Below are positions 848 to 57,228 of a stretch of 64,000 bases of DNA, piece after piece. Where the stretch lies: the IMG/VR virus record IMGVR_UViG_3300046665_000548, positions 186,001-250,000 of that record; one strand, 5' to 3'. Every line of letters begins with the position of its first letter. Position 1 is the stretch's first letter. The notes under the pieces are model-generated. The model did no database searches. It had not been told where the DNA came from and saw only the letters and a list, made by a program, of their open reading frames with translations. A program made the position numbers and the translations under genes.

Positions 848-1135
848 ATGACTCTCAGTGAGATGGAAACACTCTTCGAGAAACACGACGGGGAATACGG
901 CAAATACGACCGTGTGATACCTAAGGCCAGCGGAAGGCCCGATCTCGATGCTTTCATACTCTTGAACACGCTCTGCCCCGGTAGTGGCGACATTATTTCA
1001 GCGGCAGAGCACGACGAATTCTGGATAAGCGTTGACCCTGCCGATTTCGCCAAGGTTGCCGACGAGGGTCACATCCTTACGCTAATCCGCTGCGGCGTCT
1101 TCTTGATAGATGATGGTTTTAAGATGAATGCCTAG
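848..1135 (+). CDS. Hypothetical phage protein
   Basis: 95-aa ORF in the same orientation as the preceding gene. Confidence 0.6.
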   Translation: MTLSEMETLFEKHDGEYGKYDRVIPKASGRPDLDAFILLNTLCPGSGDIISAAEHDEFWISVDPADFAKVADEGHILTLIRCGVFLIDDGFKMNA

Positions 1136-2012
1136 CGGCAGAGTCCATCGCAGTAAGCTGGGCCTGTTCACGTCGTTGGTCAGGTACGGTGCGCTGGAGT
1201 TCTGGATTGAAGATCACGATTTCCATCGATTCTTTCTCATCTGCATATTGGTAGACATCGTTGGTGGAAGTAAACACCACAAAATCGTACTTTCCGAACA
1301 CCGCATCGCTAATCTTCGGAAGAACGTCTTCGTAAGCTTCACCGATCTGCTCACCAAAAATAATTTGTATCAGAGCGGCGCTCTCATAAAGACCCTCGTA
1401 TGGGCTCATGCGTGCGAGAAGCTGGAAAAGTTGGATACGAAACTGGCTGATCTTGCGGCCCTTCTCGTAATCGCGATCCTTGGGGCCAAACTTTACTTTG
1501 TTCTTAAGCTCTGCCAGGAGCGCGGCATCATCGAAGCGAGTCGCGTTCTGTCGGACAGTCTGCTCCATTTGTGGGGACCAGTCGCTGCGAGATTTTTGAA
1601 GGCATGTGATGAGTGCGTTCAGCACATCATCACGAGACATCTTCTTGTTTGCCGTGGAAACGAGCGGCGATCCGTTGTCCCAATGATCGTAGTTCTCACC
1701 GCATCGCTTGAACGCGGCTTTCAAAGCGCGAAGAACTAGGCTGAAACCGGTGTTCTTCCACGAGGCGTCATTGATGCGCTTATATCGGCAGCCCTGGGGG
1801 ATAACAACGCGAAACACGTTCGGGCCAAACTGAGCCGCAAAGCGTGGATTGTTTGTCGCATACATTCCGTTACCGAGGGGATTCCAATACTGCTCGCCTT
1901 TGTCGGCCGCGTGCGGGTTGAACTTATCAAAGGCAGCACTCTTCGTGCCGTGATAAAAAACCCACTCTCTCTTATTGACCTCTTCGTCAATGACAATCTC
2001 GGAATAGCGCAT
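1119..2012 (-). CDS. ADP-ribosyltransferase-fold (YHGT...GxGxYxT) protein, putative capsid-packaged effector
   Basis: FYHGTKSAAFDKFN...LGNGMYATNNPRFAAQFG pattern and a late acidic EIVIFNPE strand; TAAATA 5 nt upstream of the ATG. Confidence 0.55.
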   Translation of the reverse strand: MRYSEIVIDEEVNKREWVFYHGTKSAAFDKFNPHAADKGEQYWNPLGNGMYATNNPRFAAQFGPNVFRVVIPQGCRYKRINDASWKNTGFSLVLRALKAAFKRCGENYDHWDNGSPLVSTANKKMSRDDVLNALITCLQKSRSDWSPQMEQTVRQNATRFDDAALLAELKNKVKFGPKDRDYEKGRKISQFRIQLFQLLARMSPYEGLYESAALIQIIFGEQIGEAYEDVLPKISDAVFGKYDFVVFTSTNDVYQYADEKESMEIVIFNPELQRTVPDQRREQAQLTAMDSAARHSS

Positions 2013-2020
2013 AGTCTTAT

Positions 2021-2428
2021 TTACTTCGGTTCTCTAAACATTTCTTCTGTAAATTCGAGCATATCATCGGGGTCTGGGTTAGGTAGAAACTTGAAGCCGT
2101 ACTTACCGTACCATTTTTCTAGAGAGTCTTGGTCAGGTGCGGTGGCAAATCTGGGATCATCGTCGTGATCGTATGATGATCTAGGAAGCAGAGATAACCT
2201 AATACCAAGTTCGTCCGCTAGACCGGTGAGAAGGCTGATCGCCTGCGTACCAGCGCCTTTTCCAAATTGATTTCCTGTCTTTACTTCCAACACAGTGATT
2301 TCGACATCTCGATCACTCTTTGGCAAAAGGCCGACATCCAGTTTGTTGAGCAAACCCAATTTGCTCAATCGCTCTCGCGCAATGGAAACATAACGACTGG
2401 CCTTCGACGCAACCTCGAAAATCTTCAT
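2021..2428 (-). CDS. GNAT-family acetyltransferase
   Basis: QFGKGAGTQAI (motif A, Q/RxxGxG) and LEKWYGKYGF (motif B); TAAATA 5 nt upstream. Confidence 0.65.
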   Translation of the reverse strand: MKIFEVASKASRYVSIARERLSKLGLLNKLDVGLLPKSDRDVEITVLEVKTGNQFGKGAGTQAISLLTGLADELGIRLSLLPRSSYDHDDDPRFATAPDQDSLEKWYGKYGFKFLPNPDPDDMLEFTEEMFREPK

Positions 2429-2433
2429 ATCGA

Positions 2434-2450
2434 TATTTAGCGGCTAAATA
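2434..2450. promoter_or_regulatory. Divergent pair of T4-like late promoters (TATTTAG-CGG-CTAAATA)
   Basis: Palindromic TAAATA boxes lie 5 and 6 nt from the two divergent ATGs (2428 and 2457). Confidence 0.7.
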
Positions 2451-2456
2451 ACCTTC

Positions 2457-2843
2457 ATGCGTTTGGATGAAATGTTTTTGCCAGAAGAAGGCCGTATCGT
2501 TAAGGGCGTCAACACGACCTGCGATGTCGGCCCTAACGAGATCGCCATTCAATCATCAAAATTCCGGCTCGGCGTAACCAAGAACGGCATTCCAATTCGC
2601 GTGTTCAATAAAACGCATCCTCGCGACATGCTAGTCAGCGAAGCTACGCTCCAGACCGAGGCGCTGGACATCACTACCCTGCATGACACGGCTACTCATA
2701 TCTTGGCGTTGATAAAGCAAGGCTGGACAGTCTCTGATGCAGTGCACGACGTGATGCAAGGGCTAAAGGGTAACTTCCCTAAAATGAAGGACCTGATCAC
2801 TGTCCTTCGTGGAATGGGCGTGATGGTGTCCAAGAGGAATTAA
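2457..2843 (+). CDS. Hypothetical late protein
   Basis: 128-aa ORF starting MRLDEMF, directly behind TAAATA. Confidence 0.65.
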   Translation: MRLDEMFLPEEGRIVKGVNTTCDVGPNEIAIQSSKFRLGVTKNGIPIRVFNKTHPRDMLVSEATLQTEALDITTLHDTATHILALIKQGWTVSDAVHDVMQGLKGNFPKMKDLITVLRGMGVMVSKRN

Positions 2844-3778: not shown

Positions 3779-3791
3779 ATGTCTATTTACG

Positions 3792-4247: not shown

Positions 4248-4376
4248 TCGTCAAGCCTAATGAGTCCAATTTTTCTATCCGACAACAACTCCTATATTCC
4301 GACATCGTTCCGCCAAATAGTAAAAAAGCCTCCGGGTTTCCCCGAAGGCTCTATATGGGGGACAAGTCAGAGCCGA

Positions 4377-9750: not shown

Positions 9751-9778
9751 AGGATAACCGTTTTTAGCTATTCGTCAA
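9751..9778 (-). promoter_or_regulatory. Early sigma70-type promoter TTGACG-N16-TATCCT (one of six copies)
   Basis: The same TTGACG-N16-TA(G/T)(T/C)(C/T)T layout occurs at 12804-12831, 26042-26069, 32741-32768, 39231-39258 and 40088-40115, all on the minus strand ahead of gene starts. Confidence 0.75.
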
Positions 9779-10125
9779 GCGTTTTTAACATCATTGCTGG
9801 AGAGTTGAGATATTGCTGCGATGCGAGATCGAAGAGCATCATCGCCATTGCGGTATGCCGGGGCGAGACCGATAACCGCATCGGCAATCTTTTGGAAATC
9901 CTGGATGGACGAAGCCCCTCTGCGAACAGCAACTCGGAAACTACGGTTCAAGATAGCAGAAATTGTTTTCTGCCCGACATCATCGCCGGGAAGCTGTTGC
10001 GCGATCTCGTTTTCGGCGGTGAGGGTAACCTCTTTAAGGCCGTTCACCGTTTCATGCGACGTGACGGCGGGCTGTTTGCCCGCCTTCAAGCCAGCAAGTG
10101 CTCTAAGGCGACTCAAGTCTTCCAT
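9775..10125 (-). CDS. Hypothetical late protein (LxRLRxLAGL N-terminus)
   Basis: TAAATA 8 nt upstream; MEDLSRLRALAGLK start. Confidence 0.65.
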   Translation of the reverse strand: MEDLSRLRALAGLKAGKQPAVTSHETVNGLKEVTLTAENEIAQQLPGDDVGQKTISAILNRSFRVAVRRGASSIQDFQKIADAVIGLAPAYRNGDDALRSRIAAISQLSSNDVKNA

Positions 10126-10136
10126 AACATCCGTAT

Positions 10137-10667
10137 TTATCTCGGACCTTGGACCGTCCTAAGAGCTTCAGCCTTTTTAATCAGAGCAATACGCAGTCGC
10201 TCATATTCTTCTCTTGCCATTTGAACTGGCGCTGTCGGAATGTCAGCGCTCCCAGCAGGTATCAAGCGTTCCGGATCGAATGGACGAGTAGCGACCTTTC
10301 CGTTCCCGTAGGTCACCGTTTCCGTTTTATTTTTTACGTCGTACGTGATGGAGGCAATATCGTCCGGCTTCAGGTCCGGAGGAATTGCACCAACTGAACT
10401 GCGAGCAATTGGGAGAGGCGTTTTCTCATCACCATCGCGTTCTTCTACCTCTTGTTTGTTACGTTTAGAGCCGCTAGCCTCGTGCTTTGCGAAGCGTCCG
10501 TGCACCCATCGGCCGTTGACGCGCTTTTTGGTAAAATATGACTTGGCATCGGCAGACGTAATGAGCCCCATATCACCGTAGATCGGCAGATTGGCGCAAA
10601 ACATAACGGCTAGCGAAAGAATGCCCGCCTGGATACAACGTGTAACCCGCATATGTAAAAACCTCAC
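10137..10667 (-). CDS. Membrane-anchored/exported hypothetical protein
   Basis: Hydrophobic N-terminal segment in a 176-aa ORF. Confidence 0.55.
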   Translation of the reverse strand: MRFLHMRVTRCIQAGILSLAVMFCANLPIYGDMGLITSADAKSYFTKKRVNGRWVHGRFAKHEASGSKRNKQEVEERDGDEKTPLPIARSSVGAIPPDLKPDDIASITYDVKNKTETVTYGNGKVATRPFDPERLIPAGSADIPTAPVQMAREEYERLRIALIKKAEALRTVQGPR

Positions 10668-10735: not shown

Positions 10736-10879
10736 TTACTCGCCGCCGCCGCCGCCGCTGGTCTCGCCGCCCTTATCCTTGTCGTCGCCGGTTGACGGCT
10801 TGCCCTTAGGCACGTTCGAGTAATCCGGGTTCTGTTCGAAATCTTCGCCGTTTTCGCCGCCCTTGTTCTTATCAGACAT
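10736..10879 (-). CDS. 47-aa acidic Gly-rich small protein (not in ORF track)
   Basis: MSDKNKGGENGEDFEQNPDYSNVPKGKPSTGDDKDKGGETSGGGGGE*; AAGGGAG RBS and TAAATA at 10911-10916. Confidence 0.6.
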   Translation of the reverse strand: MSDKNKGGENGEDFEQNPDYSNVPKGKPSTGDDKDKGGETSGGGGGE

Positions 10880-10941
10880 ATTACACACTCCCTTGTTGGT
10901 GGTTACCGTATATTTATCCCGCCGATATGCGTTCTACGTAA

Positions 10942-12781: not shown

Positions 12782-12920
12782 TGCGTCCTCATGTGTGAGC
12801 AGCAGACTATACTGAAAAAACAATTCGTCAAGCGTTTTTAGTCGGAGAAATCACCTAGAGGATAACTTCCCTAGTATTGCAATAAATACATTACACTTCT
12901 TTGGGAAAGGAATTTTAACT

Positions 12921-13751
12921 ATGGGCCGTGGATTACATCCTCGCTTGTTCAGTGCCTACACAGGCGCTAATAAGCAGCTTCGCGTCTCTTCCTGCTGGAT
13001 CGCAGGCGAGGGCAGCGCAAACACTACATCTTACATCGTTCGTCAGACCGGCGAGAGCACTTTCGTCGTGAAGAACACAGCAACCGGTAATACGGGCGCA
13101 GTTCGTCTTCAGGCAGCAAACGTCACAGCAGCCGGTCAGGCCGTCATCAACGTCGATCCTGTCGGCGCTGGTACAGGCGCAACCGTTACCGCTCGTATGC
13201 GCGCCAAGTCTGCTGTTGTTGTCAACGGCGGCACCTCTGGCTACGCAGTAGCCGACACCATCACCCTGGCTGGCGGCACCTCGACCACCGCTGCTATCCT
13301 CACGGTTGCGTCGGTTGACGGTAGCGGCAAGATTCTTACCGCAACGGTAAGCACCGCTGGTAGCTACTCCGTTCTTCCGGCAAACCCGGTAGCACAGGGC
13401 TCCAGGACTGGTACTGGTGTTGGTACCCCGACATTCACCGTGACTTGGGAAGTTCTGTCCTACACGGTTGGTGCTGGCGGTTCGGCATACGTCAACGCAG
13501 TCGCTGATATCTCCGGCGACGGCGGCGCAACCGCAACTGTCACTGTGACCACTGGAGCAGTTTCTGCGGTGGCTCCTGGTGATCGCGGAACGTTCACCAC
13601 GATCCCAACCGTCACGATCATCGGTTCGGCCGCGACAGAGCACGCAAAGCGCTTCTCTGGTCATCGCGTCGTCACGTTCGAAGGCAACGCTTATCCGTGG
13701 CACGAGGATGGTTCTTCTGGTGCAGGCGAAGCAGAGCTTCCCCTCCTCTAA
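12921..13751 (+). CDS. Virion structural protein (Gly/Thr/Ala/Val-rich beta protein)
   Basis: AATAAATA late promoter at 12883, AAAGGA RBS, low-complexity beta-type composition, own terminator. Confidence 0.65.
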   Translation: MGRGLHPRLFSAYTGANKQLRVSSCWIAGEGSANTTSYIVRQTGESTFVVKNTATGNTGAVRLQAANVTAAGQAVINVDPVGAGTGATVTARMRAKSAVVVNGGTSGYAVADTITLAGGTSTTAAILTVASVDGSGKILTATVSTAGSYSVLPANPVAQGSRTGTGVGTPTFTVTWEVLSYTVGAGGSAYVNAVADISGDGGATATVTVTTGAVSAVAPGDRGTFTTIPTVTIIGSAATEHAKRFSGHRVVTFEGNAYPWHEDGSSGAGEAELPLL

Positions 13752-18197: not shown

Positions 18198-18509
18198 CTA
18201 TTTCTTCGCCGCCATATTAAAGCGACGATTGACCTCATCGTAGATGTAGTTGACCTGAGTAGCGATAGCTTTGCGCATCTTCTTCACATTCAACACCACG
18301 CGTGCTTCAGCGATCTGATGAAGCTCGGGGTTCTTCAGCATCTCTTCAAGCTCTTTTCCTTTGACCAGCTTTGTCGTGCCTTGGAAGTCTGTGATCTTGG
18401 CCATCACAATATATTCCGGCGGCACTTCTTCGGGGTCAAGGCGGCTTATAATATCATCGAGAACGTCGGTAGGCGTCATGTCTGCTCCAGCGACAATATT
18501 TTCATTCAT
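18198..18509 (-). CDS. Hypothetical late protein
   Basis: TAAATA at 18512-18517 immediately before ATG 18509. Confidence 0.6.
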   Translation of the reverse strand: MNENIVAGADMTPTDVLDDIISRLDPEEVPPEYIVMAKITDFQGTTKLVKGKELEEMLKNPELHQIAEARVVLNVKKMRKAIATQVNYIYDEVNRRFNMAAKK

Positions 18510-18592
18510 GTTATTTACTCCAACCCATTGATCACATGGATGTTTAGTAAGCGCATAGAAAAGGGCGCGATATGCGCCCTTCGCTCCGCGAA

Positions 18593-20207: not shown

Positions 20208-20837
20208 TTACTCTTCATTGAGGTCTCGAAGACCTAGCTTCTTCGCTAGACGCTCGGGCTCTGTTTCCAAGCTCGTATAGCCAAGCTCGCCTGATGGCGG
20301 GTTGATACGGATCAGATCATCCTGCCATCCAATGTACGCCTTCCAAGACTCATGAGGAATCGAGATCGGAAAGCTCCGGCACTTGTTGACCAACTCATGA
20401 TAGGTCGGCCGATACGGCTTAGTCTTCGGCTGAATGCGCGCGTCGTTGCCGCGCTTGAAGTTGCACGGTCCACAGCACGCGACAAAATTCAGGTAACCAG
20501 TGCCACCCTTCTTCGACTTGGGGATCACATGGTCCACAGTCAGCTTGCCTGCCGGAAATACCTTGCAGCAATACTGGCACGTGTAGAGGTCTCGAAGGTA
20601 CAACAAATCCTTCGAGTAACCGATCCCACGTCGGAACTTGACGTAATCCTTAAAGATGATGACGCTCGGTACCTTGTAGGAACGAGACGGGCTTTTAACC
20701 TCCCATCCCTCATAGGTGTGGAGCGGGCGCGCAGCATCCAGATAGACGGCCTTAATCGCATCCTGCCAGCTAAGCGAGCTTAGCGGGAGAATGCTGATCG
20801 GCTGCCAGTCGGCATTAAGCGCAAGAACGTGTCCCAT
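20208..20837 (-). CDS. HNH endonuclease
   Basis: RDLYTCQYC...TVDHVIPKSK.G...N.VACCGPCNFKRG. Confidence 0.9.
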   Translation of the reverse strand: MGHVLALNADWQPISILPLSSLSWQDAIKAVYLDAARPLHTYEGWEVKSPSRSYKVPSVIIFKDYVKFRRGIGYSKDLLYLRDLYTCQYCCKVFPAGKLTVDHVIPKSKKGGTGYLNFVACCGPCNFKRGNDARIQPKTKPYRPTYHELVNKCRSFPISIPHESWKAYIGWQDDLIRINPPSGELGYTSLETEPERLAKKLGLRDLNEE

Positions 20838-20884: not shown

Positions 20885-22084
20885 TCAATACATGTTGAAG
20901 TTGGCGACTTTTAGTCCATCGCCGTCAATTCGTAAAGCCGCAGATGACAATCGGCCGCCTTTTCCGGAGCCCGTGTCGAGGAAGATCGTGTTACCGCCGT
21001 TGCTGTTGACGACCGTCATTGGCTTGGCTGTTGAACGAATGTCATGGCCAACGATGACAGTCATATCGGCAGGAACATTCTCCGTCCAAGTGTAACGACG
21101 TGCTGGGCGTTCTTCATTATAGTTCGCATCGAATTCTCCAAAGAGCGCCCAGGTTTCTAATTCTTTTGCAGTTGCCGATCCCGTCCAGAAACCTGGATGT
21201 ACCCCAGCGTGAGTGAAAAGAATGTTGCCGATCACTCGCCAATGACTTGACCTACTGACGAGACCTTTGAACCGCCCCTGCCAGCGCTTTCTGGCGGGCA
21301 ATCCCAATGATCCTAGGGCGTCCGTGGTGACCTTGTTGCCGTCGCTCAGTCGAACAGACGTGCGACCTCGCTCAATCTGATTGATCCATCTCATGATCTT
21401 TCGTTCATGATTACCAAGGATCATCTCACCCTGGCCGCGCATAACAACGCGATAGACCTCATCAGCGACTTCCAGCGTGTCGGAGCCGTAATCGATCACA
21501 TCACCCAGGAAGATCATGTAATGGTTTCGAGATCGAGCCCAGTCCAACGCGCTCAACAGAGATTGATACATCCCGTGAACGTCCCCAATGACGGTGATGC
21601 CATTCCAGTTCGCTTTGAGGCTTTCCAGATCGGGCTTTGTTTTGTCTACAAGCGACGGCTGATGAATTCTCCAGTCAATGACCTCGGCCAGTCCGTCGCC
21701 ACGAAGCAAGTCTTTTTCAGCCGCGTAGAAACGCTGCACGGATTGTTCGTCCGCTCCAGCAGGATCACAAAGGAAGTAGAAAACCGGAACACCAATATCG
21801 CTTCCCAATCGCGCGAGAGACATTCGGTCTTCCCGTCGAAGATTAGGAGCGTCAACAACAACGCGTTCGCCAAGATCAAGCTTCACCTGAATGCGGTGCC
21901 TGATCTCAGCGAAAACAATCGAATTGATTTCTGGTTTACTTTTCTCACCTACGAGATTGTAGGTCACATTGGCAGCACTAAGAATCTCGTAATCGGGGAA
22001 ATAACGAGCAAGTGTTTGCTCTCGATTTACTTGAGATGGACTTACCGCAATTACTAAAGAATGAGAAGGAACAACTTTTTGCAT
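20885..22084 (-). CDS. Polynucleotide kinase-phosphatase-like protein: degenerate AAA_33 kinase plus intact calcineurin-like phosphoesterase
   Basis: GDVHG, GDVIDYG, GNHE, THAG, VGHD and LDTG motifs; the P-loop reads VSPSQVNRE. Confidence 0.8.
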   Translation of the reverse strand: MQKVVPSHSLVIAVSPSQVNREQTLARYFPDYEILSAANVTYNLVGEKSKPEINSIVFAEIRHRIQVKLDLGERVVVDAPNLRREDRMSLARLGSDIGVPVFYFLCDPAGADEQSVQRFYAAEKDLLRGDGLAEVIDWRIHQPSLVDKTKPDLESLKANWNGITVIGDVHGMYQSLLSALDWARSRNHYMIFLGDVIDYGSDTLEVADEVYRVVMRGQGEMILGNHERKIMRWINQIERGRTSVRLSDGNKVTTDALGSLGLPARKRWQGRFKGLVSRSSHWRVIGNILFTHAGVHPGFWTGSATAKELETWALFGEFDANYNEERPARRYTWTENVPADMTVIVGHDIRSTAKPMTVVNSNGGNTIFLDTGSGKGGRLSSAALRIDGDGLKVANFNMY

Positions 22085-27923: not shown

Positions 27924-27937
27924 TAAATATCCATCCT

Positions 27938-33039: not shown

Positions 33040-33116
33040 TGGTAGGCGCGGTGGGATTCGAACCCACGTGACCAGGATTTTAAGTCCCGTACGGTAACCA
33101 ACTACGTCACGCGCCC
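33040..33116 (-). tRNA. tRNA-Leu(TAA) with a short (class I) variable region
   Basis: GGGCGCG/CGCGCCT acceptor stem, CGGGA-CTTAAAA-TCCTG anticodon arm, 5-nt variable loop GTCAC, GTGGG-TTCGAAT-CCCAC T arm, ACCA. Confidence 0.85.
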
Positions 33117-33130: not shown

Positions 33131-33179
33131 TCAGCGAGAGAGACGTAAGTGGCCGAGTGAGTTCATGAAATTATTTATA
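33131..33179 (-). promoter_or_regulatory. TATAAATA late promoter plus 11-codon leader ORF (MNSLGHLRLSR) before tRNA-Leu(TAA)
   Basis: Promoter at 33172-33179, ATG 33166, TGA 33131-33133; contains TTA and two CTC codons. Confidence 0.5.
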
Positions 33180-33490: not shown

Positions 33491-33534
33491 TAGGTATGTC
33501 TACTGGGTGTCGCGCGTAGAGTAAATACTGGACA

Positions 33535-36973: not shown

Positions 36974-37369
36974 TCAGCCATTTGTCAGGAAACCTACCGT
37001 TTCCAGATTCTTCATATTCTGGCCGAAGGTAGCAACGCCGATCTCCGTCAGTTTTTGTGTGGCCTCTGCTCGGCCATGAAGACAAACCCACAAAGAGAAC
37101 GGTGCGTGCTGACCATCTGCGTAACGCACCTCAATTCCGTGAGGCCGAAACTCTCTTGGAACCGCAATTAGATACACCGGGAGATCGAGCCGCCGCAAGT
37201 CTCGTTCGCACTGAACGAAGTCCTTAGCCAATCCTTCATTGATCATCTTCATGAAGGTAAGCGTGATCACACCAACATCGTTGGCATCGACGGCGAGCTT
37301 TATTCGCTCATCACGTTCAGGATGATCAACGCCAGATGGAGGCTCGGAATAATACGCGAGATAATCCAT
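36974..37369 (-). CDS. Hypothetical protein
   Basis: ORF track. Confidence 0.6.
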   Translation of the reverse strand: MDYLAYYSEPPSGVDHPERDERIKLAVDANDVGVITLTFMKMINEGLAKDFVQCERDLRRLDLPVYLIAVPREFRPHGIEVRYADGQHAPFSLWVCLHGRAEATQKLTEIGVATFGQNMKNLETVGFLTNG

Positions 37370-38055
37370 TAGAATGGTTCCGTGAGAATAGTGATTCCAT
37401 CGCGGCCTTCCTGCTCATAAGCAGGTGTTTGTAAACGCGACATCGACAAAGCACCCGACAGGTCGGACGCCTCTGGCTCTGGATCACCAAAGACCCAAGC
37501 GGTAAGCTTGCGGTAATCGTGCGCACAGAAGCGATAATTTGCAATCACAATATGCGCGTCCAGCGCGGCATGGCGCAAATAGGGCTGCTTCGTGAAATCA
37601 ATGACGGCGATACGAGAAATCGTTCCAGGCGTGATCGTGCCCAAATAGGAACACGTTCCGAGAACCTTCAAGCTGTCTTCATAGGACCACCGCTGCTCCA
37701 GCAGAAGATCGCGATAATGCTCCACACGCTGCTTTGGAGTGTAATGGGCAGGGAGGTCATCCTTGCGTCTCCCAAGCTGTTCTAGGGCATCCTCGTCCGC
37801 ATTGAACCAATCCTCCACGAGAAGATCGTGATCAATCTCAACTACCACTCCAACGTGGCGGTGCCGCTTGGCCGTGAGAGACGCTACGGCGGCGAAATAG
37901 ACCGGATATGCATCGGTCAGGTAGACCGCATCGGGACAGCTTTGTGGGGCATCGTCGGTCCAGTGACCACCGCGCTTTTTCCGTTCACGCGGCTCGATAC
38001 CCCGTTTGAGGATCAAGTCCAACGCGGCTCTGGCTGTGCCGTGATAAAGCTTCAT
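37369..38055 (-). CDS. ADP-ribosyltransferase-fold protein
   Basis: KLYHGT...ILKRGIEP...AVYLTD...VVVEID. Confidence 0.55.
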   Translation of the reverse strand: MKLYHGTARAALDLILKRGIEPRERKKRGGHWTDDAPQSCPDAVYLTDAYPVYFAAVASLTAKRHRHVGVVVEIDHDLLVEDWFNADEDALEQLGRRKDDLPAHYTPKQRVEHYRDLLLEQRWSYEDSLKVLGTCSYLGTITPGTISRIAVIDFTKQPYLRHAALDAHIVIANYRFCAHDYRKLTAWVFGDPEPEASDLSGALSMSRLQTPAYEQEGRDGITILTEPF

Positions 38056-38303: not shown

Positions 38304-38870
38304 TCAGGTGTAGACGATCATAGCGAGTCGCAGACTGCGACGAATGAGTTCGTTGTGGTCCGCGAACAGCGTCATCGCGTCAATCTCGGTAGGGGTCTTC
38401 CAGGTTACGGCAGCGGCGTCGTCAGCCGCCTCGACGGTCACCGTCGCGTCAGGATAAACTCGGAGATCGAACAGGAAGCAGTGCGAAACGATTCGCGCAC
38501 GAGGGTCGCGCTCGGGAGCGTCACCGATAACCGTGACGCCACGTTGCGCAGCCTTGATGAGATCATCCGAGGGATGACCCTTCGGCTCACTCGTCTCGAC
38601 TCGCAGCTTGGTCTCTTCATCAAGCTCGCGCACGGCGCAGCCGAGAGCCGACTCGTCGTCGTAGTTCATGAAGCCACCCGGAAGAGCCCACATGCCTTCG
38701 CCGGGCCACTTGGCGCGCTGGACGAGCAGAATTTCAGGCTCGAAGGTCAGGGACTTGTCGCCATCGACAGCGGGAAGGCGATGTCGAACCACCACGGAAT
38801 CGCCGGTCAGAAACGGCCCTTTGCCATATTTCCGATGATAGTCGGCAACGCGAGGGTCAAGCTCAGTCAT
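38304..38870 (-). CDS. NUDIX hydrolase, ADP-ribose pyrophosphatase (NadM-Nudix/NrtR-like)
   Basis: WALPGGFM...CAVRELDEET, PERDPRARIVS, ADDAAAV.W, LFADH. Confidence 0.85.
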   Translation of the reverse strand: MTELDPRVADYHRKYGKGPFLTGDSVVVRHRLPAVDGDKSLTFEPEILLVQRAKWPGEGMWALPGGFMNYDDESALGCAVRELDEETKLRVETSEPKGHPSDDLIKAAQRGVTVIGDAPERDPRARIVSHCFLFDLRVYPDATVTVEAADDAAAVTWKTPTEIDAMTLFADHNELIRRSLRLAMIVYT

Positions 38871-39264
38871 TATTTACTTCCTCTGTTTAAATCAAAAATC
38901 CACTGAACGAAACGACCGCGATAGCCGCGACCACTGCGGCTACAAGCAGCAATGTTGCGTTGGTTGCCGGTGAATTCCACCAATCACGCAATTTCTTCAT
39001 GACAAGATCGCCTGATGCTTGATCGCGCTCAGCTTCGGTAACACGTCCGTGCTGAGATACGCGTAATCGTTGTCCGGACCCTGAAACTTGGGGGACAGAA
39101 AGTAAAGCTGCTGCTCGGTGATCAGCGCCTGGATGGCGGCAAGCTGCGCCTTGAGTTCGGCGTTCTCGGTCTCAAGACGGTGGATGTAGTTATTGTCGCC
39201 CTTGGCCATGCGAATCTCCGTGATAGCCATAGACTACCACGGATAATTCTTTCGTCAACTGTTT

Positions 39265-44612: not shown

Positions 44613-44687
44613 TGGAGGTTGAGGTGGGGATCGAACCCACTCGTGGAGGTTTTGCAGACCTCAGCGTTCCCATTTCGCCACTCAACC
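44613..44687 (-). tRNA. tRNA-Cys(GCA)
   Basis: GGTTGAG/CTCAACC, GAGGT-CTGCAAA-ACCTC, U73, CCA. Confidence 0.95.
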
Positions 44688-44688
44688 G

Positions 44689-44764
44689 TCAACGCGACAG
44701 GATTCGAACCTGTGATCCCCAGTCTCCCGAACTGGTAGGGACGGCCAGACTCCCCTACGCGCTG
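44689..44764 (-). tRNA. Atypical tRNA-Pro(GGG) (C33, A37, G38; no encoded CCA)
   Basis: CAGCGCG/CGCGTTG, A73, CCAGT-TCGGGAG-ACTGG, ACAGG-TTCGAAT-CCTGT. Confidence 0.75.
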
Positions 44765-44772
44765 TAACTCAA

Positions 44773-44979
44773 TTAGTCTAGCTTGAACCGCTCTGCGACA
44801 GGCAGACGGCGATAGCGCTCGATAACTCCGCTATAGAATTTGATAGCTTCGAGCGCGATCTCTCTGACTTCAACTAGGCTGTCGGCTTCGACGCAAAAGT
44901 AAGGCGAACTACTCGACATAGCCACCCAACGGCCCGGTTCGTATTCTCTGACGGTGACCGTCACGATGTTATCCGTCAT
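44773..44979 (-). CDS. HicB-like antitoxin-fold small protein inside the tRNA array
   Basis: VTVREYEPGRWVAMS...FCVEADSLVEVREIALEAIKFY resembles the HicB N-terminal domain; GAAGGGG RBS. Confidence 0.5.
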   Translation of the reverse strand: MTDNIVTVTVREYEPGRWVAMSSSSPYFCVEADSLVEVREIALEAIKFYSGVIERYRRLPVAERFKLD

Positions 44980-45000
44980 GACGGTCCCCTTCAAAACCTA

Positions 45001-45077
45001 TGGAGTCGGCGGCAGGACTTGAACCTGCATACTCCGGGTTTGCAACCCGGCTGACTAGCCATTCTCAACACGCCGAC
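45001..45077 (-). tRNA. tRNA-Cys(GCA), second copy
   Basis: GTCGGCG/CGCCGAC, CCGGG-TTGCAAA-CCCGG, U73, CCA. Confidence 0.92.
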
Positions 45078-45078
45078 G

Positions 45079-45153
45079 TGGTGACGGAACCTGGGATCGA
45101 ACCAGGGACATGCGCCGTATGAAAGCGCCGCTCTACCGCTGAGCTATACCGCC
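45079..45153 (-). tRNA. tRNA-Met(CAT), elongator-type (Ile2 not excluded)
   Basis: GGCGGTA/TTCCGTC, GCGCT-TTCATAC-GGCGC, ACCA. Confidence 0.88.
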
Positions 45154-45160
45154 GAAAGCA

Positions 45161-45246
45161 TTGTTCGTGACCCACCGGACTACTCAAAGGACCGGGAGGC
45201 TGTCCTTGTCCATATGAGAGTTTGCCTCCCGATGGGTCTCGAACAA
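45161..45246 (-). ncRNA. Unassigned structured element within the tRNA array
   Basis: Nested stems TTGTTCG/CGAACAA, GACCCA/TGGGTC and CGGGAGGC/GCCTCCCG. Confidence 0.35.
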
Positions 45247-45261
45247 CGCTCTATTAACTTG

Positions 45262-45338
45262 TGGTCAGGGTGGCAGGCTACGACCCTGCGATTTCCTCTT
45301 CCCGAAAGAGGCGGATTACCAGACTTTCCCACACCCTG
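45262..45338 (-). tRNA. tRNA-Pro(CGG) with non-canonical T loop (GTCGTAG)
   Basis: CAGGGTG/CACCCTG, CCTCT-TTCGGGA-AGAGG, ACCA. Confidence 0.9.
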
Positions 45339-45352
45339 TAACTCTGTATGCT

Positions 45353-45438
45353 TGGTGCGGCCAAGAGGACTCGAACCTCCACTCTTTTTGGGAACTACCA
45401 CCTCAAGGTAGCGCGTCTACCAGTTCCGCCATGGCCGC
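45353..45438 (-). tRNA. tRNA-Leu(GAG)
   Basis: GCGGCCA/TGGCCGC, CTACC-TTGAGGT-GGTAG, long variable arm, ACCA. Confidence 0.95.
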
Positions 45439-45462
45439 ATTCGTGGTGTTAGATGTGCTCTG

Positions 45463-45537
45463 TCAGGCGTCTCGGATTCGAACCGAGGATACTCCTGTAC
45501 CCAAAACAGGCGGATTACCAGACTTTCCCAACGCCTG
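45463..45537 (-). tRNA. tRNA-Pro(TGG) embedded in a 16-bp acceptor-stem extension
   Basis: CAGGCGT/ACGCCTG, CCTGT-TTTGGGT-ACAGG; no CCA at the normal position; flanks pair (45448-45463 with 45538-45553). Confidence 0.9.
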
Positions 45538-45590
45538 ACAGAACACATCTAACGCACGCGACTAGAGTAATCTCTTGCTCCAGTCAGTAT

Positions 45591-45678
45591 TGGTGGGCGG
45601 AGTAGGACTCGAACCTACGTAGGTTTTGAAGCCGGGAGGTTTACAGCCTCCGCCGATTGCCGCTCCGGTCACCCGCCC
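45591..45678 (-). tRNA. tRNA-Tyr(GTA)
   Basis: GGGCGGG/TCCGCCC, GGAGG-CTGTAAA-CCTCC, long variable arm, ACCA. Confidence 0.95.
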
Positions 45679-45740
45679 ATGGAAGACGATCTCCGACTGT
45701 CCGCAGACAGTTCATCAATCGTCATCACTAAACTTTAGAC

Positions 45741-45776
45741 AAAGAAAAACCCCGGTCAGATTTCTCTGCCGGGGCT
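45741..45776 (-). terminator. Attenuator terminator upstream of the tRNA array
   Basis: AGCCCCGG-CAGA-GAAA-TCTG-A-CCGGGGT followed by TTTTCTTT. Confidence 0.9.
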
Positions 45777-45800
45777 CTTCTGCTTTCGGGTTCTGCTCGC

Positions 45801-45887
45801 TTACACCACCAAGATGCGCGCGACCAGCCCGAGGGCAGAAAGCCCCCTGGTGGGATAGCACGGCATTGGGTAAAGAGCGTTGAACAT
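45801..45887 (-). CDS. Attenuator leader peptide MFNALYPMPCYPTRGLSALGLVARILVV (not in ORF track)
   Basis: GAGGAAG RBS; codons 5-12 match the downstream tRNAs; codons 14-20 can pair with the terminator 5' arm. Confidence 0.8.
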   Translation of the reverse strand: MFNALYPMPCYPTRGLSALGLVARILVV

Positions 45888-45931
45888 CGAATTCTTCCTC
45901 TGACGCGTCCGGTTGGACCGTCTGACAGTTT

Positions 45932-45939
45932 TATTTATA
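45932..45939 (-). promoter_or_regulatory. T4-type late promoter TATAAATA driving the leader and tRNA array
   Basis: Exact T4 late consensus 45 nt upstream of the leader ATG. Confidence 0.75.
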
Positions 45940-51987: not shown

Positions 51988-51988
51988 A

Positions 51989-52883: not shown

Positions 52884-52970
52884 TTCGGCCTCTTGGTTCG
52901 GTCTAGACTGTATCAGGTAGTCGGCTATTGCTCAAGCGTTTGCCCTTAATATCATTGGGTAAATAGAGCC

Positions 52971-54353
52971 ATGCGCCAGTTCATCACCCTTATTGAAAAA
53001 TTGCTTACGAATACTGGGATTACCCGGAATCCCTATCGTATTTCAACTCGTCTACCGACCGGCAAGACAGCGACCGAAAATCCCTTCGATCATGCGCTGA
53101 CAGTTGATGTGGATTCCGCCAAGAAAGACCCCAAGTCCTTTGAGCACAACGTAAACCTTGTGAAGGGATACGCCGCGATCCCGCATGATCTCCATGGCGG
53201 AAGCCATGAAGAGGTAGCAGACCACTTTATCAATCACGTCAAAGATAATCTGCTTTGGCTCCATGACAAAATGCCAGAAGCGGTTCGTGAACGCGCCCGC
53301 AAATGGTATGACGGCGCGAATAAGCTGACCGAAGAACGAGCGCGCGAGTACGGTCTTCCTCACAGCACTACTGCTGCGGTGTACGCCGCTCTATCTCCGC
53401 AGAAGGCATGGCATGAAAATGTTGCTCTTGGTGATCGCGTCCTTGAAGCATTCCTGCGTAAGCAGAAGTCTGGTTGGACCGATGCCATGGAGGCGGTCGC
53501 GCAACGCATTTGGATGAACGACCGCAATCGTCCGATCCATATGGCGATTAAAGACAAGAAACTGTCCCAGCTTGAGGATATCGATCACATTGCGGCTTGG
53601 ATTCGTACCTATGATGAAGCGCACAATCCGAACTCATATCAGACAGTTGAGCCAGAAGGCCGTCTAGGACGCCCCTATACGAACCGTGATGCTTACGGAC
53701 ATGGCACAAAGAACCCAGAGGCACATGCATCGGTGCGCTGGGGCTCTCTGGCGGAAATCGGAAAGGCTGTTGCAGCGATCAATGCAGGCGACGATCTGGA
53801 AAAGATTTCAGAATTGATGGGTGAGCGCCATAAGGTTCGTAATTTCTACAACAATATTGTCGATCCGAACGGCCAGCACGGCGATGTGACGATTGATACG
53901 CACGCGGTCGCGGGTGGCCTTCTTCATCCCCTCGGCGGAAACACGACTGAGGTTGCGCATAACTTCAAGAACTCTCTTCCGGCCGGTCACAAAGATTCGG
54001 ATACTTTCGTGGCAGCGAAGGGCTCTGTTATTAACGGCGTGAAGGGCACATATCCGCTCTATGCGGACGCGTACCGCCGCGCTGCTAAAGAACGTAATCT
54101 TTTGGCACGCGAGATGCAGTCTATTACTTGGGAAGCCGCCAAGGGGTTGTTCAACGGCAAGGGTAATGGCAAGGCTAAACATCTTGCGCAAATCAAGTCT
54201 CTGTGGCAGCAATACCAATCAGGCAAGATGAGCGCTCATGATGTTCGAGAGAAAATTCACGACTTGTCTGGTGGCATTGCGATGCCTGATTGGGCATCAG
54301 ATCAGGCCGGAAAACCATCTGCTGCGCCAGTAGACTTGGGAGGAAAAAAATGA
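52971..54353 (+). CDS. Late protein with putative HhH DNA-glycosylase-like (polyvalent-protein) domain
   Basis: WYDGA, AALSPQKAW, KVRNFYNNI, VTIDTH, MQSITW pattern; TAAATA 5 nt upstream; starts MRQFITLIE. Confidence 0.5.
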   Translation: MRQFITLIEKLLTNTGITRNPYRISTRLPTGKTATENPFDHALTVDVDSAKKDPKSFEHNVNLVKGYAAIPHDLHGGSHEEVADHFINHVKDNLLWLHDKMPEAVRERARKWYDGANKLTEERAREYGLPHSTTAAVYAALSPQKAWHENVALGDRVLEAFLRKQKSGWTDAMEAVAQRIWMNDRNRPIHMAIKDKKLSQLEDIDHIAAWIRTYDEAHNPNSYQTVEPEGRLGRPYTNRDAYGHGTKNPEAHASVRWGSLAEIGKAVAAINAGDDLEKISELMGERHKVRNFYNNIVDPNGQHGDVTIDTHAVAGGLLHPLGGNTTEVAHNFKNSLPAGHKDSDTFVAAKGSVINGVKGTYPLYADAYRRAAKERNLLAREMQSITWEAAKGLFNGKGNGKAKHLAQIKSLWQQYQSGKMSAHDVREKIHDLSGGIAMPDWASDQAGKPSAAPVDLGGKK

Positions 54354-54577: not shown

Positions 54578-54921
54578 GAACGAAGCTTGTTTACATCTTC
54601 CGCCCGGTGCCAGCCTATGTCGCTTTGGGAAAGCCCCAGTTCAGTAACGATATGGCTGACCAGGAAGGTGGAGTTCTCCAACGATCTTTTGCCCGGTCTA
54701 TTAGATACCATTGGGAAATAGATCGAACACGTTTTTGCGGGGAAACCAACATACGTGCGTACCGAGAACAAGAAACCATGCAACTCTAATTCGACTGCTT
54801 CGTAATGGCTCAATTGATCTTCATCTGTGTACGTGGAAAACCCTAGAGCTTTCACTTCTATGTTCAAGACCGCCGCTGGCTCAGCATTATCCCACAGACG
54901 ATTATTAGATACTTTCAGCAC
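54532..54921 (-). CDS. Hypothetical protein
   Basis: ORF track. Confidence 0.5.
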   Translation of the reverse strand: MLKVSNNRLWDNAEPAAVLNIEVKALGFSTYTDEDQLSHYEAVELELHGFLFSVRTYVGFPAKTCSIYFPMVSNRPGKRSLENSTFLVSHIVTELGLSQSDIGWHRAEDVNKLRSYRRAGGTEGAGFSN

Positions 54922-54956
54922 GATAAATACTCACAAATCCTTTGGGAGACCCTTTA

Positions 54957-55415
54957 ATGACTATTACCGTTTCACCGACTACTGAACAAGTAGCAAATTC
55001 ATGGGCAGCAAGCCACAGCTTGGTTCGTCCAAACTGCACGCTTTTCCCGTCGCAAAACGCCGTAGACAACCGCACCTACGTTGCGAATGCGGAATTGGCC
55101 GAGAACCCCGCAATCACCTATCTTAAGGCCGAGCTTGATGGACAGATCGCCGCCGTTGTGATGGGCTACGAGAGCGAGCCAGATGTGTATCGGGTACGAG
55201 TTCTGCGTATCGCACAAACTGACTTGTGGATTGATCTGGGCGAAGCTCTGGTTAGTGCCATGATCGCCCAAGCACAACTTGAGGGATGCACATCTATTTG
55301 GGCCACCGTGGTCCCCGAGCGCCTTCCGATTTGGGTCGATCTCGATTTTGACGTTGGTGAGTATATCGCCGCATCGGAGACCTACAAGGTCAGCCGACTA
55401 GTTCCCACCACCTAA
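54957..55415 (+). CDS. GNAT-fold-like late protein
   Basis: TAAATA at 54924 and GGGAG RBS; beta/alpha pattern like GNAT but no clear acetyl-CoA motif. Confidence 0.45.
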   Translation: MTITVSPTTEQVANSWAASHSLVRPNCTLFPSQNAVDNRTYVANAELAENPAITYLKAELDGQIAAVVMGYESEPDVYRVRVLRIAQTDLWIDLGEALVSAMIAQAQLEGCTSIWATVVPERLPIWVDLDFDVGEYIAASETYKVSRLVPTT

Positions 55416-55442
55416 CAAAAACGCCCCATTAGGGGCGTTTTT

Positions 55443-55733
55443 TTATTGGAAGCCAGCAAGCTTGAAGAGGATAGCTTTATTCTCTTCTTTGAAGGCGTAG
55501 ATCGATCCCGGCTGGCCAGGATAGTGCGTCCAACTCCAATCGATAGAATAGTGCCCGACCTTCTCGTTCAACCACTCTTCAATTTCCGGCGTTATCTTGT
55601 CGTCAGAAAGGTGCCAATGCTCCAACTTATCGTTGAAACCTATAAGCTCATACGCCAACCATAGGCACCATCTTTGGGTCATCTGGCCGGTAATGCGTTG
55701 AACGATGATTGGGAGGGATAGGACGCTAGACAA
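55443..55733 (-). CDS. W..A..FKL paralog family protein
   Basis: EIEEWLNEKVG...YAFKEENKAILFKLAGFQ. Confidence 0.6.
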   Translation of the reverse strand: MSSVLSLPIIVQRITGQMTQRWCLWLAYELIGFNDKLEHWHLSDDKITPEIEEWLNEKVGHYSIDWSWTHYPGQPGSIYAFKEENKAILFKLAGFQ

Positions 55734-56010
55734 GGAATTAACCCTTCTCGTTGTCCATCGACGGACTGTCCTGCGTGTTTTGTTTTTTCATAGCGGTTTC
55801 ACACCTACCAACTCCAGCACTGGCCCGTTCGGAAAGTTCCGAGGCATTTCGGCACGGCTTTTCGATATCTTGTCCACAAAATTTACACTGCATTGCCGTC
55901 TCCTTTTCTGAGTCGCGAGCCTATCAAGAAACTATGTCGCATTCAACGGCATCGTGGGTTCCACCACTTAACGCTAAATAATCGATGCCTAACTAGGAGG
56001 TAAATTTATT

Positions 56011-57228
56011 ATGGTCACTACAGTTCCGGTAGTTCTCCCGTATGATGGGAAGTCTCTTCTACAATTCAATGCATTTCGTATCGTAAACAATTCCAGGATT
56101 GCTTCTCCTGCTCAGTTACTGAACCCTACAATCGCGGTTACCAAGGGAGTGAGTAACGTCAACTCCACGATTATTACTCCCGCGACAACAACCCTCCCCT
56201 CTATTCTTCCAACAGACAGTCGTATGCGCGTTGGTTCCGCTGGATCGCTAACCAATTTCGGTAACGGTTTCTATGGTCCGATTTACATTACCGAAGCTGG
56301 TGCCACTGCCACCGATGGCTGGTCTCTGATTTTTGAAACGGATGCGGAAGCTGTTGACGTTTGTATAAGAGAGGCACCAGGAACAAAGGTTCGTGTTCGA
56401 ATTGAAAGCCAATACTGGGTCTCGCTGTCCGACCTAGATGTTTCCGGTGACGGTTCCACAAGCACGTACGTCAAATACGATTTTGGTACAGGTAACGGTA
56501 AACCACGTCGTTGGGAAATTTGTTTCTCTGGCCCCACCCAGATTCGGGGCCTGAACGCGGGTCTGAGCACAGGCGGTTCAACGATCTCTAACAACCCATT
56601 CCGTTGCTGGAGCCCGGCGACCGGTCTTAGCACTCGTCTGATGGTCTGGGGCGATGATCTCGCTTACGGTATGGGAGCTAGCTCGATCCGCAATGGCTTC
56701 GCGTACCTGCTCGGTGAGGCTCTAGGAAGTCTAACTCCCACGCCTAGTGGTGTTTTGGGCCAGGGGCATCTCACAACCAGCGCTGGCGGCCTTGCCGCAG
56801 GTGATCGTGTTGTCGATGTCGAGCGTTTTCCTACTCTCGATATTTTGGTTGACACTTATGGTCTCTACGACCGTGGTCAAAACATCACTGATCTTCAGAA
56901 TGCTGTAACTCAGCATACTGCCGGTCTTCGTGCCGCGCTACCCAACGCGTTCATCTTCAAGATGCCTATGACGATGCCGGGTCTCTCTCTTCCGGCCGAC
57001 CGCCTCAACGCTATCATGAACGGGTTCAACAACGCTGCCGATCCAGACAGAATGGTATTTTTCGATCCGTCCACCACCCCTACGATTGGAAACGTGTTCT
57101 TTACGTCAACTAACACAACCATGTATTTCAATAGCAACGGTATTCATCTGAATGACCGTGGTCATGCGTATCTGGCTCGCCGTGTCTCGCAATTGATCTT
57201 GCGAAACCTTCGAACTTGGCAAGGCTAA
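56011..57228 (+). CDS. Virion protein with degenerate SGNH/GDSL hydrolase domain
   Basis: VWGDDLAYG (block I), GLYD (block III), NGIHLNDRGH (block V); TAAATA at 55975 and AGGAGG RBS. Confidence 0.7.
   Translation: MVTTVPVVLPYDGKSLLQFNAFRIVNNSRIASPAQLLNPTIAVTKGVSNVNSTIITPATTTLPSILPTDSRMRVGSAGSLTNFGNGFYGPIYITEAGATATDGWSLIFETDAEAVDVCIREAPGTKVRVRIESQYWVSLSDLDVSGDGSTSTYVKYDFGTGNGKPRRWEICFSGPTQIRGLNAGLSTGGSTISNNPFRCWSPATGLSTRLMVWGDDLAYGMGASSIRNGFAYLLGEALGSLTPTPSGVLGQGHLTTSAGGLAAGDRVVDVERFPTLDILVDTYGLYDRGQNITDLQNAVTQHTAGLRAALPNAFIFKMPMTMPGLSLPADRLNAIMNGFNNAADPDRMVFFDPSTTPTIGNVFFTSTNTTMYFNSNGIHLNDRGHAYLARRVSQLILRNLRTWQG

Follow-up and report, generated by a model that had tools for sequence, protein, structure and literature searches.

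The analysis presented here concerns a window of 64,000 nucleotides (bases 186,001 to 250,000 of the 607,744-bp IMG/VR record IMGVR_UViG_3300046665_000548, which is rated as complete by CheckV and shows a GC content of 51.7%), in which the hexamer TAAATA lies directly in front of the start codons of a set of genes and several of the encoded proteins begin with a similar short peptide, referred to as the tag in the following. Evaluated over the entire record, TAAATA does lie beside ATG far more often than chance would allow. The hexamer is most plausibly interpreted as a late promoter of the type known from phage T4 that gives leaderless mRNAs, since a T4-type head module and a sigma factor of the gp55 family are both present in the genome. 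Packaging of the tagged proteins in the phage head is well supported by proxy, since the tag is enriched in the virion proteome of the related Agrobacterium phage Atu_ph07, including a homologue of a small acetyltransferase of the window. Beyond packaging, we infer that the tag may be cleaved after Glu and that the proteins may be injected and act on targets in the host. Altogether, an explanation combining a late promoter, leaderless mRNAs and a tag that serves as head-targeting signal is considered rather probable as a whole.

Within the window, the number of TAAATA copies is not significant (19 compared to 14.35 expected). In the complete record the hexamer occurs 210 times, and in 107 of these cases (51%) an ATG follows within 0-8 nucleotides (nt), with the spacer peaking at 4 nt (25 sites) and 5 nt (44 sites). 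For the 14 other orderings of the same letters, an ATG at this distance was found record-wide in only 9-29% of the cases, and the arrangement TAAATA-N5-ATG was present 44 times compared to 4 times for the reversed-pattern control. These two comparisons exclude a chance occurrence of TAAATA. Open reading frames (ORFs) of at least 50 amino acids (aa) are opened by 75 of the 107 box-adjacent ATGs (70%), while the same holds true for 32% of random ATGs. Among all hexamers upstream of starts TAAATA is by far the most enriched one, followed by hexamers of the GGAG-type Shine-Dalgarno (SD) sequence. Around the box neither a -35 element nor any other conserved position was observed, apart from an avoidance of T just upstream, the preceding base being C, A or G in 73 of 75 sites. 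A second class comprises 48 boxes located 9-60 nt upstream of starts with an SD.

The leaderless sites show further peculiarities. At 21 of 79 of them the TAA of the box doubles as the stop codon of the upstream ORF, with stop, promoter and start contained in about 14 nt. The start codons are distributed as ATG 54, GTG 6 and TTG 0, compared to 259, 64 and 41 in SD-led gene calls, and in the class with the 5-nt spacer 28 of 32 ATGs are preceded by C or T. A pyrimidine at -1 followed by a purine at +1 is the usual context of a transcription start.

A near-identity search of 20 kb against cultured phages resulted in a tRNA match only, and thus in no close cultured relative at the DNA level. The major capsid protein is of the T4-type Gp23 (PF07068, E = 2.5e-93) and shows an identity of 80% to that of Sinorhizobium phage Phosso (469 kb), of 69% to that of Atu_ph07 (490 kb) and of about 65% to the counterparts in Rak2-like phages such as CBB, GAP32 and PA5oct. 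With its 608 kb, the megaphage of this record belongs to the Rak2-like jumbo phages, a group distantly related to T4, and among these to the Atu_ph07/Phosso branch. Its capsid gene is adjoined by a prohead protease of the Peptidase_S77 family (T4 gp21 family; PF03420, E = 1.3e-27), and the portal, a coiled-coil scaffold and a gp67-like protein of 82 aa are encoded beside it as well. The late sigma factor of the gp55 family (L026:7863-8693:-) was recognised by phrog_12791 with E = 9e-79 and by phrog_234 with E = 4.5e-19, and it is also found at E = 6.6e-5 when T4 gp55 itself is used as query.

The genes behind the box include the tail fibre in the window and, elsewhere in the genome, the tail sheath, a gp15-like sheath stabiliser, neck proteins and several proteins of "virion structural" PHROGs. 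In Phosso and Atu_ph07, TAAATA stands 18-35 nt upstream of genes for the protease, the terminase and virion proteins and is followed by an ordinary SD. Moreover, ATAAATA was proposed earlier as the late promoter of the Rak2-like phages CBB and GAP32, both of which encode a gp55 homologue (PMC5259590). A preceding sequence-only reading of the window had regarded the box as a T4-type late promoter, which is borne out by the sigma factor, the position before tail fibre, sheath and neck genes, the missing -35 element and the occurrence of the box with leader and SD in relatives. The full 8-bp consensus of T4, TATAAATA, which was brought forward there, does not apply, as the conserved part comprises only TAAATA.

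The late promoter of T4 consists of an 8-bp box without -35 element, situated about one helical turn upstream of the transcription start (PMC2988020). Since the bases at -12, -9 and -8 are flipped in the open-complex structure with gp55 (PMC7892883), the T4 box can be placed at -13 to -6, and because of this span a 5-nt spacer puts +1 on the A of the ATG. Transcription should thus start at the A of the start codon and the mRNAs should be leaderless. The divergent gene pairs are informative in this respect. The window pair starting at 2428 and 2457 has 28 nt between its ATGs and boxes that stand back to back, and at genome positions 135473/135483 the ATGs of another leaderless pair are separated by only 9 nt and have the palindrome TAAATATTTA in common. 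Because of these distances of only 9-28 nt with back-to-back boxes, there is no room for any other promoter. The leaderless layout is pronounced in the megaphage and likewise in two relatives that are uncultured, of 543 kb (31 vs 4) and 453 kb (27 vs 3), and it is absent from Phosso, Atu_ph07 and two other relatives examined. Outside the window the megaphage additionally carries two genes for the ribosomal protein bS21 (PF01165), at G000:C1:440677-440832 (+) with E = 6.7e-19 and at 510818-510976 (-) with E = 4.6e-18, which could be relevant to how translation is initiated, given the roughly 75 leaderless genes of this phage.

The tag occurs in two forms. The short form, M-[RK]-h-x-[DE]-[LI], is usually followed by [LI]-x-E within a few residues (ending within residues 5-12), and the long form reads M-x-M-R-x-h-h-x-L-h-E. 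Using these fixed patterns, the tag was found on 23 of the 75 leaderless genes compared to 13 of 782 others (Fisher p = 1.5e-17), and inside proteins, away from the N-terminus, the core of the long form occurs about 100 times less often. Most of the 13 tagged genes in the latter group follow immediately after a leaderless gene within one operon and possess no TAAATA of their own. This arrangement is also seen in a tandem array at genome positions 111185-117640 (L014/L015), in which about ten small genes are all long-tagged and a box is present only before the first gene of each run, with alternating domains comprising GNAT (two), the ADP-ribosyltransferase (ART) domain ART-PolyVal (53.6 bits), the mini-GNAT family and unknowns. 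Several members of the mini-GNAT BLAST family share, instead of the tag or in addition to it, an N-terminal domain with conserved N-P, R-G, W and H.

The peptides quoted in the sequence-only reading (MRYSEIVIDE, MKIFEV, MRLDEMFLPEE and MRQFITLIE) could be read exactly as given. Its suggestion that these N-termini are similar to the capsid-targeting sequence of T4 holds in so far as a recurring tag of this kind exists and a protease of the S77/gp21 family is encoded, and it fails for the genes starting at 33535 (tail fibre), 10125 and 18509, which are untagged.

Since the codons for Arg, Lys, Glu and Asp inside the tag vary freely among synonyms, the conservation acts at the protein level, and a nucleotide-level cause of the motif was rejected on these grounds. 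Among the leaderless or tagged proteins, 70 of 88 are BLAST singletons, and the tag is joined to domains as unrelated as ART-PolyVal, AcrVA5-like mini-GNAT, GNAT and DUF7178. Paralogy alone as the cause of the tag is rejected by these singletons as well as by the enrichment in Atu_ph07, which persists after paralogues are collapsed. Homologues of the ART in unrelated phages align only from about residue 30 onward, and in 16 orthologues of the window ART (1119-2012) the N-terminus switches between short and long form, with the Glu before the conserved domain remaining nearly invariant. A related contig of 548 kb contains an operon of seven genes with the long form, two of which encode ARTs, and the leaderless genes of the 543-kb and 453-kb relatives begin in the same way as those of the megaphage. 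Most of the tagged megaphage proteins have no Pfam match. In the head module, the gp67-like protein and an acidic core protein of 363 aa fit the pattern of the short tag, and h-x-E peptides are found at the N-termini of both the capsid protein and the protease. The former further shows L-N-E followed by Ala at residue 54 just ahead of the Gp23 domain, and the scaffold contains 22 [LI]-x-E sites.

For Atu_ph07 a list of 140 virion-associated proteins determined by ESI-MS/MS is available (Attai et al. 2018; PMC6102473, supplement). The genome was rebuilt from its record (MF403008), and the listed proteins were matched to ORFs by molecular weight and gene order. The short tag was found on 23 of the 140 detected proteins compared to at most 15 of 671 other ORFs (odds ratio 8.6, p = 9e-10), the latter number being an upper bound since any of the first eight candidate starts per ORF was allowed to match. 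After collapsing paralogues on the basis of residues 16 onward, 11 of 117 detected families were tagged (p = 5e-4). In 19 of the 23 tagged virion proteins L-x-E lies at residues 6-8.

The tagged virion proteins include gp53 (a Zeta-toxin-like kinase, 31 peptides), gp196 (an amidoligase), the ART-like gp381 with Y-H-G-S at residues 13-16, and gp63. The latter shows 49% identity to a mini-GNAT paralogue of the megaphage by BLAST (E = 6e-19) and matches the mini-GNAT profile, with the window protein 2021-2428 as first sequence, with an hhalign probability of 97.3% and E = 1.9e-11. The long form was observed on the virion proteins gp33, gp205, gp206 and gp594. In addition, a group of 14 paralogues (gp53-gp63, gp408, gp482 and gp483), mostly of about 30 kDa, is abundant in the virion proteome, and 13 of them start with M-[RK]-[WL]-x-x-L-x-E. 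The proteome paper makes no mention of an N-terminal motif or of cleavage (PMC6102473). As regards the set of head-packaged proteins proposed in the sequence-only reading, packaging thus finds support through Atu_ph07 as a proxy, although the tag is not present on every listed gene.

In the window, the boxes with a short spacer and the genes behind them are as follows.

2018-2023 (-): TAAATA box with a 5-nt spacer to the ATG at 2012; the upstream gene 2021-2428 uses the TAA of the box as stop codon
1119-2012 (-): ART-PolyVal-type ADP-ribosyltransferase, 297 aa; tagged, the variable tag ending I-x-E at residue 10
2434-2439 (-): TAAATA box with a 5-nt spacer to the ATG at 2428; arranged back to back with that at 2445-2450
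2021-2428 (-): mini-GNAT (AcrVA5-like), 135 aa; tagged, one of at least 5 paralogues in the genome
2445-2450 (+): TAAATA box, 6 nt before the ATG at 2457
2457-2843 (+): protein of unknown function, 128 aa; tagged, no Pfam or PHROG match
10134-10139 (-): TAAATA box, 8 nt before the ATG at 10125; an out-of-frame ATG lies at 3 nt
9775-10125 (-): ORF of 116 aa; untagged, no family match in Pfam or PHROG
18512-18517 (-): TAAATA box, 2 nt before the ATG at 18509
18198-18509 (-): ORF of 103 aa; untagged, no family match in Pfam or PHROG
27924-27929 (+): TAAATA box, 8 nt before the ATG at 27938
27938-28489 (+): protein of unknown function, 183 aa; tag-like start M-R... with L-A-E at residues 10-12, outside the strict pattern
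33522-33527 (+): TAAATA box, 7 nt before the ATG at 33535
33535-36150 (+): tail fibre, 871 aa, with collagen-like repeats and S74 intramolecular chaperone; late structural gene, untagged
38871-38876 (-): TAAATA box, abutting the ATG at 38870 (spacer 0)
38304-38870 (-): NUDIX hydrolase, 188 aa; untagged, homologue of Atu_ph07 gp238 (one peptide in the virion proteome)
52960-52965 (+): TAAATA box, 5 nt before the ATG at 52971
52971-54353 (+): DUF7178 protein, 460 aa; long-form tag, structural matches start at residue 19

The boxes with a longer leader are the following.

10911-10916 (-): TAAATA box, 31-nt leader with SD, then an ORF of 47 aa (10736-10879)
12883-12888 (+): TAAATA box, 32-nt leader with SD, then 12921-13751 (276 aa, weak match to head decoration)
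54924-54929 (+): TAAATA box, 27-nt leader with SD, then 54957-55415 (152 aa)
55975-55980 (+): TAAATA box, 30-nt leader with SD, then 56011-57228 (405 aa, weak matches to GDSL lipase and tail protein)

All eight short-spacer sites that had been named before (2012, 2428, 2457, 10125, 18509, 27938, 33535 and 52971) are present, and the lack of an SD stated for them is correct, as a spacer of 0-8 nt is too short for one. The four long-leader sites (10879, 12921, 54957 and 56011) were likewise found, with leaders of 27-32 nt and an SD of the GGAG type. The site at 38870 in front of the NUDIX gene had been missed. For the protein 2457-2843 a tagged relative with a similar N-terminal region exists in Phosso (ORF at 439993).

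With regard to the enzymes, the assignment of 1119-2012 as an ART is substantiated by invariant His, Tyr and Glu residues and by homologues with PF18760, its own score of 21.3 bits being below the gathering cut-off of 31.2. ART paralogues of the megaphage reach 53.4 and 47.1 bits against the same family. By word search, 18 metagenome homologues were obtained, 8 of which contain PF18760, while a pattern-based search for relatives in IMG/VR resulted in none. The triad of H21 (in Y-H-G-T), Y51 and E264 is invariant in 16 sequences, and E10 is nearly so. The AF2 model is confident, with residues 1-7 disordered. A phmmer search of the ART against PDB sequences gave no match, and phmmer iteration failed to connect the ART paralogues. 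A scan for the motif Y-H-G-[ST] revealed about 8 further proteins in which it shortly follows the tag. Because of Y-H-G-T at residues 4-7, an untagged protein of 228 aa in the window at 37369-38055 (-), which adjoins the NUDIX gene 38304-38870 and has no PHROG match, can also be called ART-like.

The GNAT proposed for 2021-2428 proved to be a minimal GNAT which is closest to AcrVA5 by both profile and fold. The protein itself has no Pfam match, whereas the profile of its paralogues matches AcrVA5 (6iuf) with E = 4.8e-5 as well as other GNATs. In Foldseek the top match is AcrVA5 and all others are GNATs. The residues G58, Y107, G111 and F112 of the acetyl-CoA motif (G-x-G-x-x-A helix, Y-x-x-x-G-F) are conserved. 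AcrVA5 is a minimal GNAT anti-CRISPR protein that acetylates Cas12a (PDB 6iuf). Both proteins are small GNAT cores on mobile elements; the megaphage protein is only about 23% identical and comprises the N-terminal tag and an extra N-terminal helix, and the likeness implies no anti-CRISPR activity.

The designation of 52971-54353 as glycosylase-like had to be given up. Neither in sequence nor in fold did the protein show a likeness to any glycosylase, the only matches being DUF7178 and phrog_3842 and the nearest Atlas neighbours all being DUF7178. The glycosylase assignment was rejected on this basis, and the protein belongs to DUF7178, a phage-specific family of unknown function.

The observations can be combined into the following course of events. 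TAAATA would be a -10-like late box that is read by the host RNA polymerase with the phage sigma factor of the gp55 family. Because the box sits 4-5 nt before the ATG, transcription would begin on the A of the start codon or right beside it, and the resulting leaderless mRNAs would be translated without an SD. About one third of the leaderless genes, plus their operon followers, would encode tagged proteins, and the tag would recruit them to the prohead core in the manner of the T4 capsid-targeting sequence. There, the gp21-family protease would cut the tag after Glu, and the cargo would remain in the head and probably enter the next host with the DNA. This putative cargo would comprise several ART-PolyVal ADP-ribosyltransferases, AcrVA5-like mini-GNATs, larger GNATs, DUF7178 and many proteins of unknown function.

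A wider reading, which we put forward tentatively and hold to be possible without expecting it to be the case, would be that of a soil and freshwater megaphage branch with programmable loading. Here, a tag of 8-12 residues that is cut by a gp21-type protease would load dozens of anti-host or anti-defence enzymes (ARTs, AcrVA5-like acetyltransferases, kinases and amidoligases), to be delivered together with the DNA, and would take the functional place of giant polyvalent proteins. Some members would have the cargo genes on gp55-type promoters fused to the start codon, forming a large leaderless regulon, possibly aided by bS21.

Among known systems, the closest counterpart is found in T4 itself. 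According to its record, the internal proteins IPII and IPIII begin with a common 10-residue peptide ending I-A-E, and Alt, gp67, gp68, gp21 and gp22 begin with peptides of 6-10 residues ending [LI]-x-E. All internal head proteins of T4 join the prohead core via such a sequence, and gp21 cuts after the Glu (PMC5694885). For IPI-III and Alt the capsid-targeting sequence and its removal by gp21 are attributed to Mullaney and Black (1996), as cited in PMC5694885. The megaphage tag is similar in being a short hydrophobic and acidic N-terminal peptide (about 5-20 residues) that ends [LI]-x-E and occurs on unrelated head-internal proteins including one ADP-ribosyltransferase, and the gp21-family protease, the Gp23 capsid and the T4-type late promoters are found in the megaphage as well. 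Differences lie in the sequence (M-[RK]-h-x-[DE]-[LI]... compared to M-K-T-Y-Q-E-F-I-A-E), in the number of genes (at least 36 compared to about 4), in the cargo, which mostly comprises enzyme-like domains, and in the mostly leaderless genes; moreover, targeting, cleavage and injection are putative in the megaphage. As a class, the system may be regarded as a variant of the capsid-targeting and internal-protein system of T4 in combination with a T4-type late promoter of an unusual, leaderless form.

The promoter shares with TATAAATA of T4 (gp55/gp33/gp45) and with ATAAATA of CBB and GAP32 the A/T-rich -10-like box, the lack of a -35 element, the gp55 homologue and the position before structural genes (PMC2988020, PMC5259590). 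Unlike these, the megaphage keeps only TAAATA, avoids T upstream of it and shows about 75 boxes at 4-5 nt from the ATG without leader or SD.

Polyvalent proteins have been described for phages and conjugative elements (Iyer et al. 2017, as cited in PMC7824862). They resemble the cargo proposed here in the ART-PolyVal and GNAT effector domains, which are proposed to enter the host with the DNA. In the megaphage, however, these domains are not strung together in one giant polypeptide; each forms a small protein by itself and bears a tag. In the giant phages phiKZ and SPN3US, ejection proteins are processed at [AS]-x-E by a gp21-related protease (PMC5694885). The similarity consists in many head-internal proteins being cut after Glu by a T4-related protease, with propeptides for which prohead targeting is assumed (PMC5694885). 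Those propeptides mostly comprise 80-130 residues and belong to another lineage, whereas the putative signal of the megaphage has about 8-12 residues, as in T4.

Leaderless mRNAs are known from lambda cI, Actinobacteria and Deinococcus. They have in common with the megaphage genes a -10 element a few bases upstream of the ATG and the lack of an SD. In the megaphage, by contrast, the layout would be driven by a phage late sigma factor at about 75 genes, with the other genes using GGAG-type SDs.

Other explanations have to be weighed against the head-targeting of injected enzymes from leaderless late genes. It seems unlikely, though it deserves attention, that the tag is indeed a signal for targeting to the prohead core and cleavage, but that the proteins bearing it are internal or scaffold-type parts of a very large head, or late enzymes of the producer cell that are packaged incidentally. 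The gp67-like protein and the acidic 363-aa core protein share the tag N-terminus, the largest tagged family of Atu_ph07 (gp53-63, 408 and 482) is abundant in the virion and mostly without recognisable enzyme domain, and the frequent lack of Pfam matches among tagged megaphage proteins points in the same direction. The recognisable cargo domains (ART-PolyVal, AcrVA5-like GNAT and Zeta-like kinase), however, are typical of injected polyvalent or anti-defence enzymes that modify the host, and in T4 injection applies to the proteins with a comparable signal, namely Alt and the internal proteins (PMC5694885).

Regarding the box, TAAATA at the ATG could be an A/U-rich element of translation initiation that replaces the SD on longer transcripts started upstream, so that the mRNAs would not be leaderless. 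The spacer of 4-5 nt falls in the range of SD spacing, and the overlap of 21 of 79 boxes with the stop of the upstream ORF is reminiscent of coupled operons. We consider this improbable in view of the gp55-family sigma factor, the near-exclusive use of ATG with a pyrimidine at -1, the divergent pairs that leave no space for another promoter, and the occurrence of TAAATA also 20-35 nt upstream of SD-bearing genes in the megaphage, Phosso and Atu_ph07. The least plausible alternative, to which hardly any weight is given, attributes the shared N-terminus to descent of paralogues or to a nucleotide or codon need of leaderless translation instead of a protein signal. Some tagged genes are indeed paralogues, and the tag is tied to leaderless genes (23 of 75, compared to about one in 48 leadered late genes). 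It is also present, however, on operon-internal genes with ordinary upstream sequence and on SD-led genes of Atu_ph07 and Phosso, and the synonymous codon variation, the 70 singletons among 88 proteins, the different folds and the orthologous ARTs with different tag forms all speak for a signal in the protein.

Several points weigh against the preferred combination of a leaderless late promoter and a head-targeting tag. The mRNA 5' ends are deduced from the T4 geometry of -13 to -6 together with the 4-5 nt spacer. No match of a gp45-type clamp to PF09116 or PF02916 was found with Pfam, gp33 not being searched for, so that the mechanism of activation may differ from that of T4; CBB was likewise reported to be without gp45 and gp33 (PMC5259590). 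The evidence for packaging originates from the relative Atu_ph07 and not from this phage, the virions of Atu_ph07 were PEG-purified and not CsCl-banded, with some abundant non-structural proteins in the list, and the published table contains no N-terminal peptides and is therefore silent on cleavage. Since many short tags hold Glu or Asp at residue 5 plus a second Glu at residues 8-11, the cleavage site is ambiguous, and this form of the tag is absent from the head-module proteins of the more distant phage CBB. The Foldseek matches of the ART model, which are to catalytic domains of the diphtheria-toxin type, are weak, and the evidence does not separate injection of the cargo from its simple retention in the head. 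Finally, the tag is missing from 52 of the 75 leaderless genes and was seen on just about one of the 48 leadered late genes. As a guess at the reason for this coupling, a low level of translation would suit a low-copy cargo, and the bS21 genes offer another lead.

If the head-targeting explanation is true, a simple sequence rule would predict which proteins of very large phages travel inside the capsid, and this rule already sorts the virion proteome of Atu_ph07. Provided that the tag works as proposed, first-strike anti-defence enzymes are likely to be frequent among the capsid-borne proteins. The tag would furthermore be a short and portable handle for packaging foreign proteins in the heads of jumbo phages, as the T4 sequence has been. 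The approximately 75 genes with the promoter on the ATG would constitute one of the largest leaderless regulons in an otherwise SD-using phage and, because close relatives keep their leaders, a natural system for studying why and how leaders are lost.

Apart from the protein-coding genes described so far, the window contains 12 tRNA genes in total. A TAAATA at 33172-33177 (-) lies about 55 nt upstream of the gene for tRNA-Leu(taa) at 33040-33116 (-), which may be driven by a late promoter. A cluster of nine tRNAs at 44613-45937 (-) stands behind a sigma70-like TTGACA-N17-TATAAAT, and the TAAATA at 45932-45937 is part of this -10 element and not a late box. Furthermore, an HNH endonuclease is encoded 25 nt behind a TAAATA box and adjoins a NinI-like phosphatase / RNA-ligase-like gene (20208-20837 (-) and 20885-22084 (-)).

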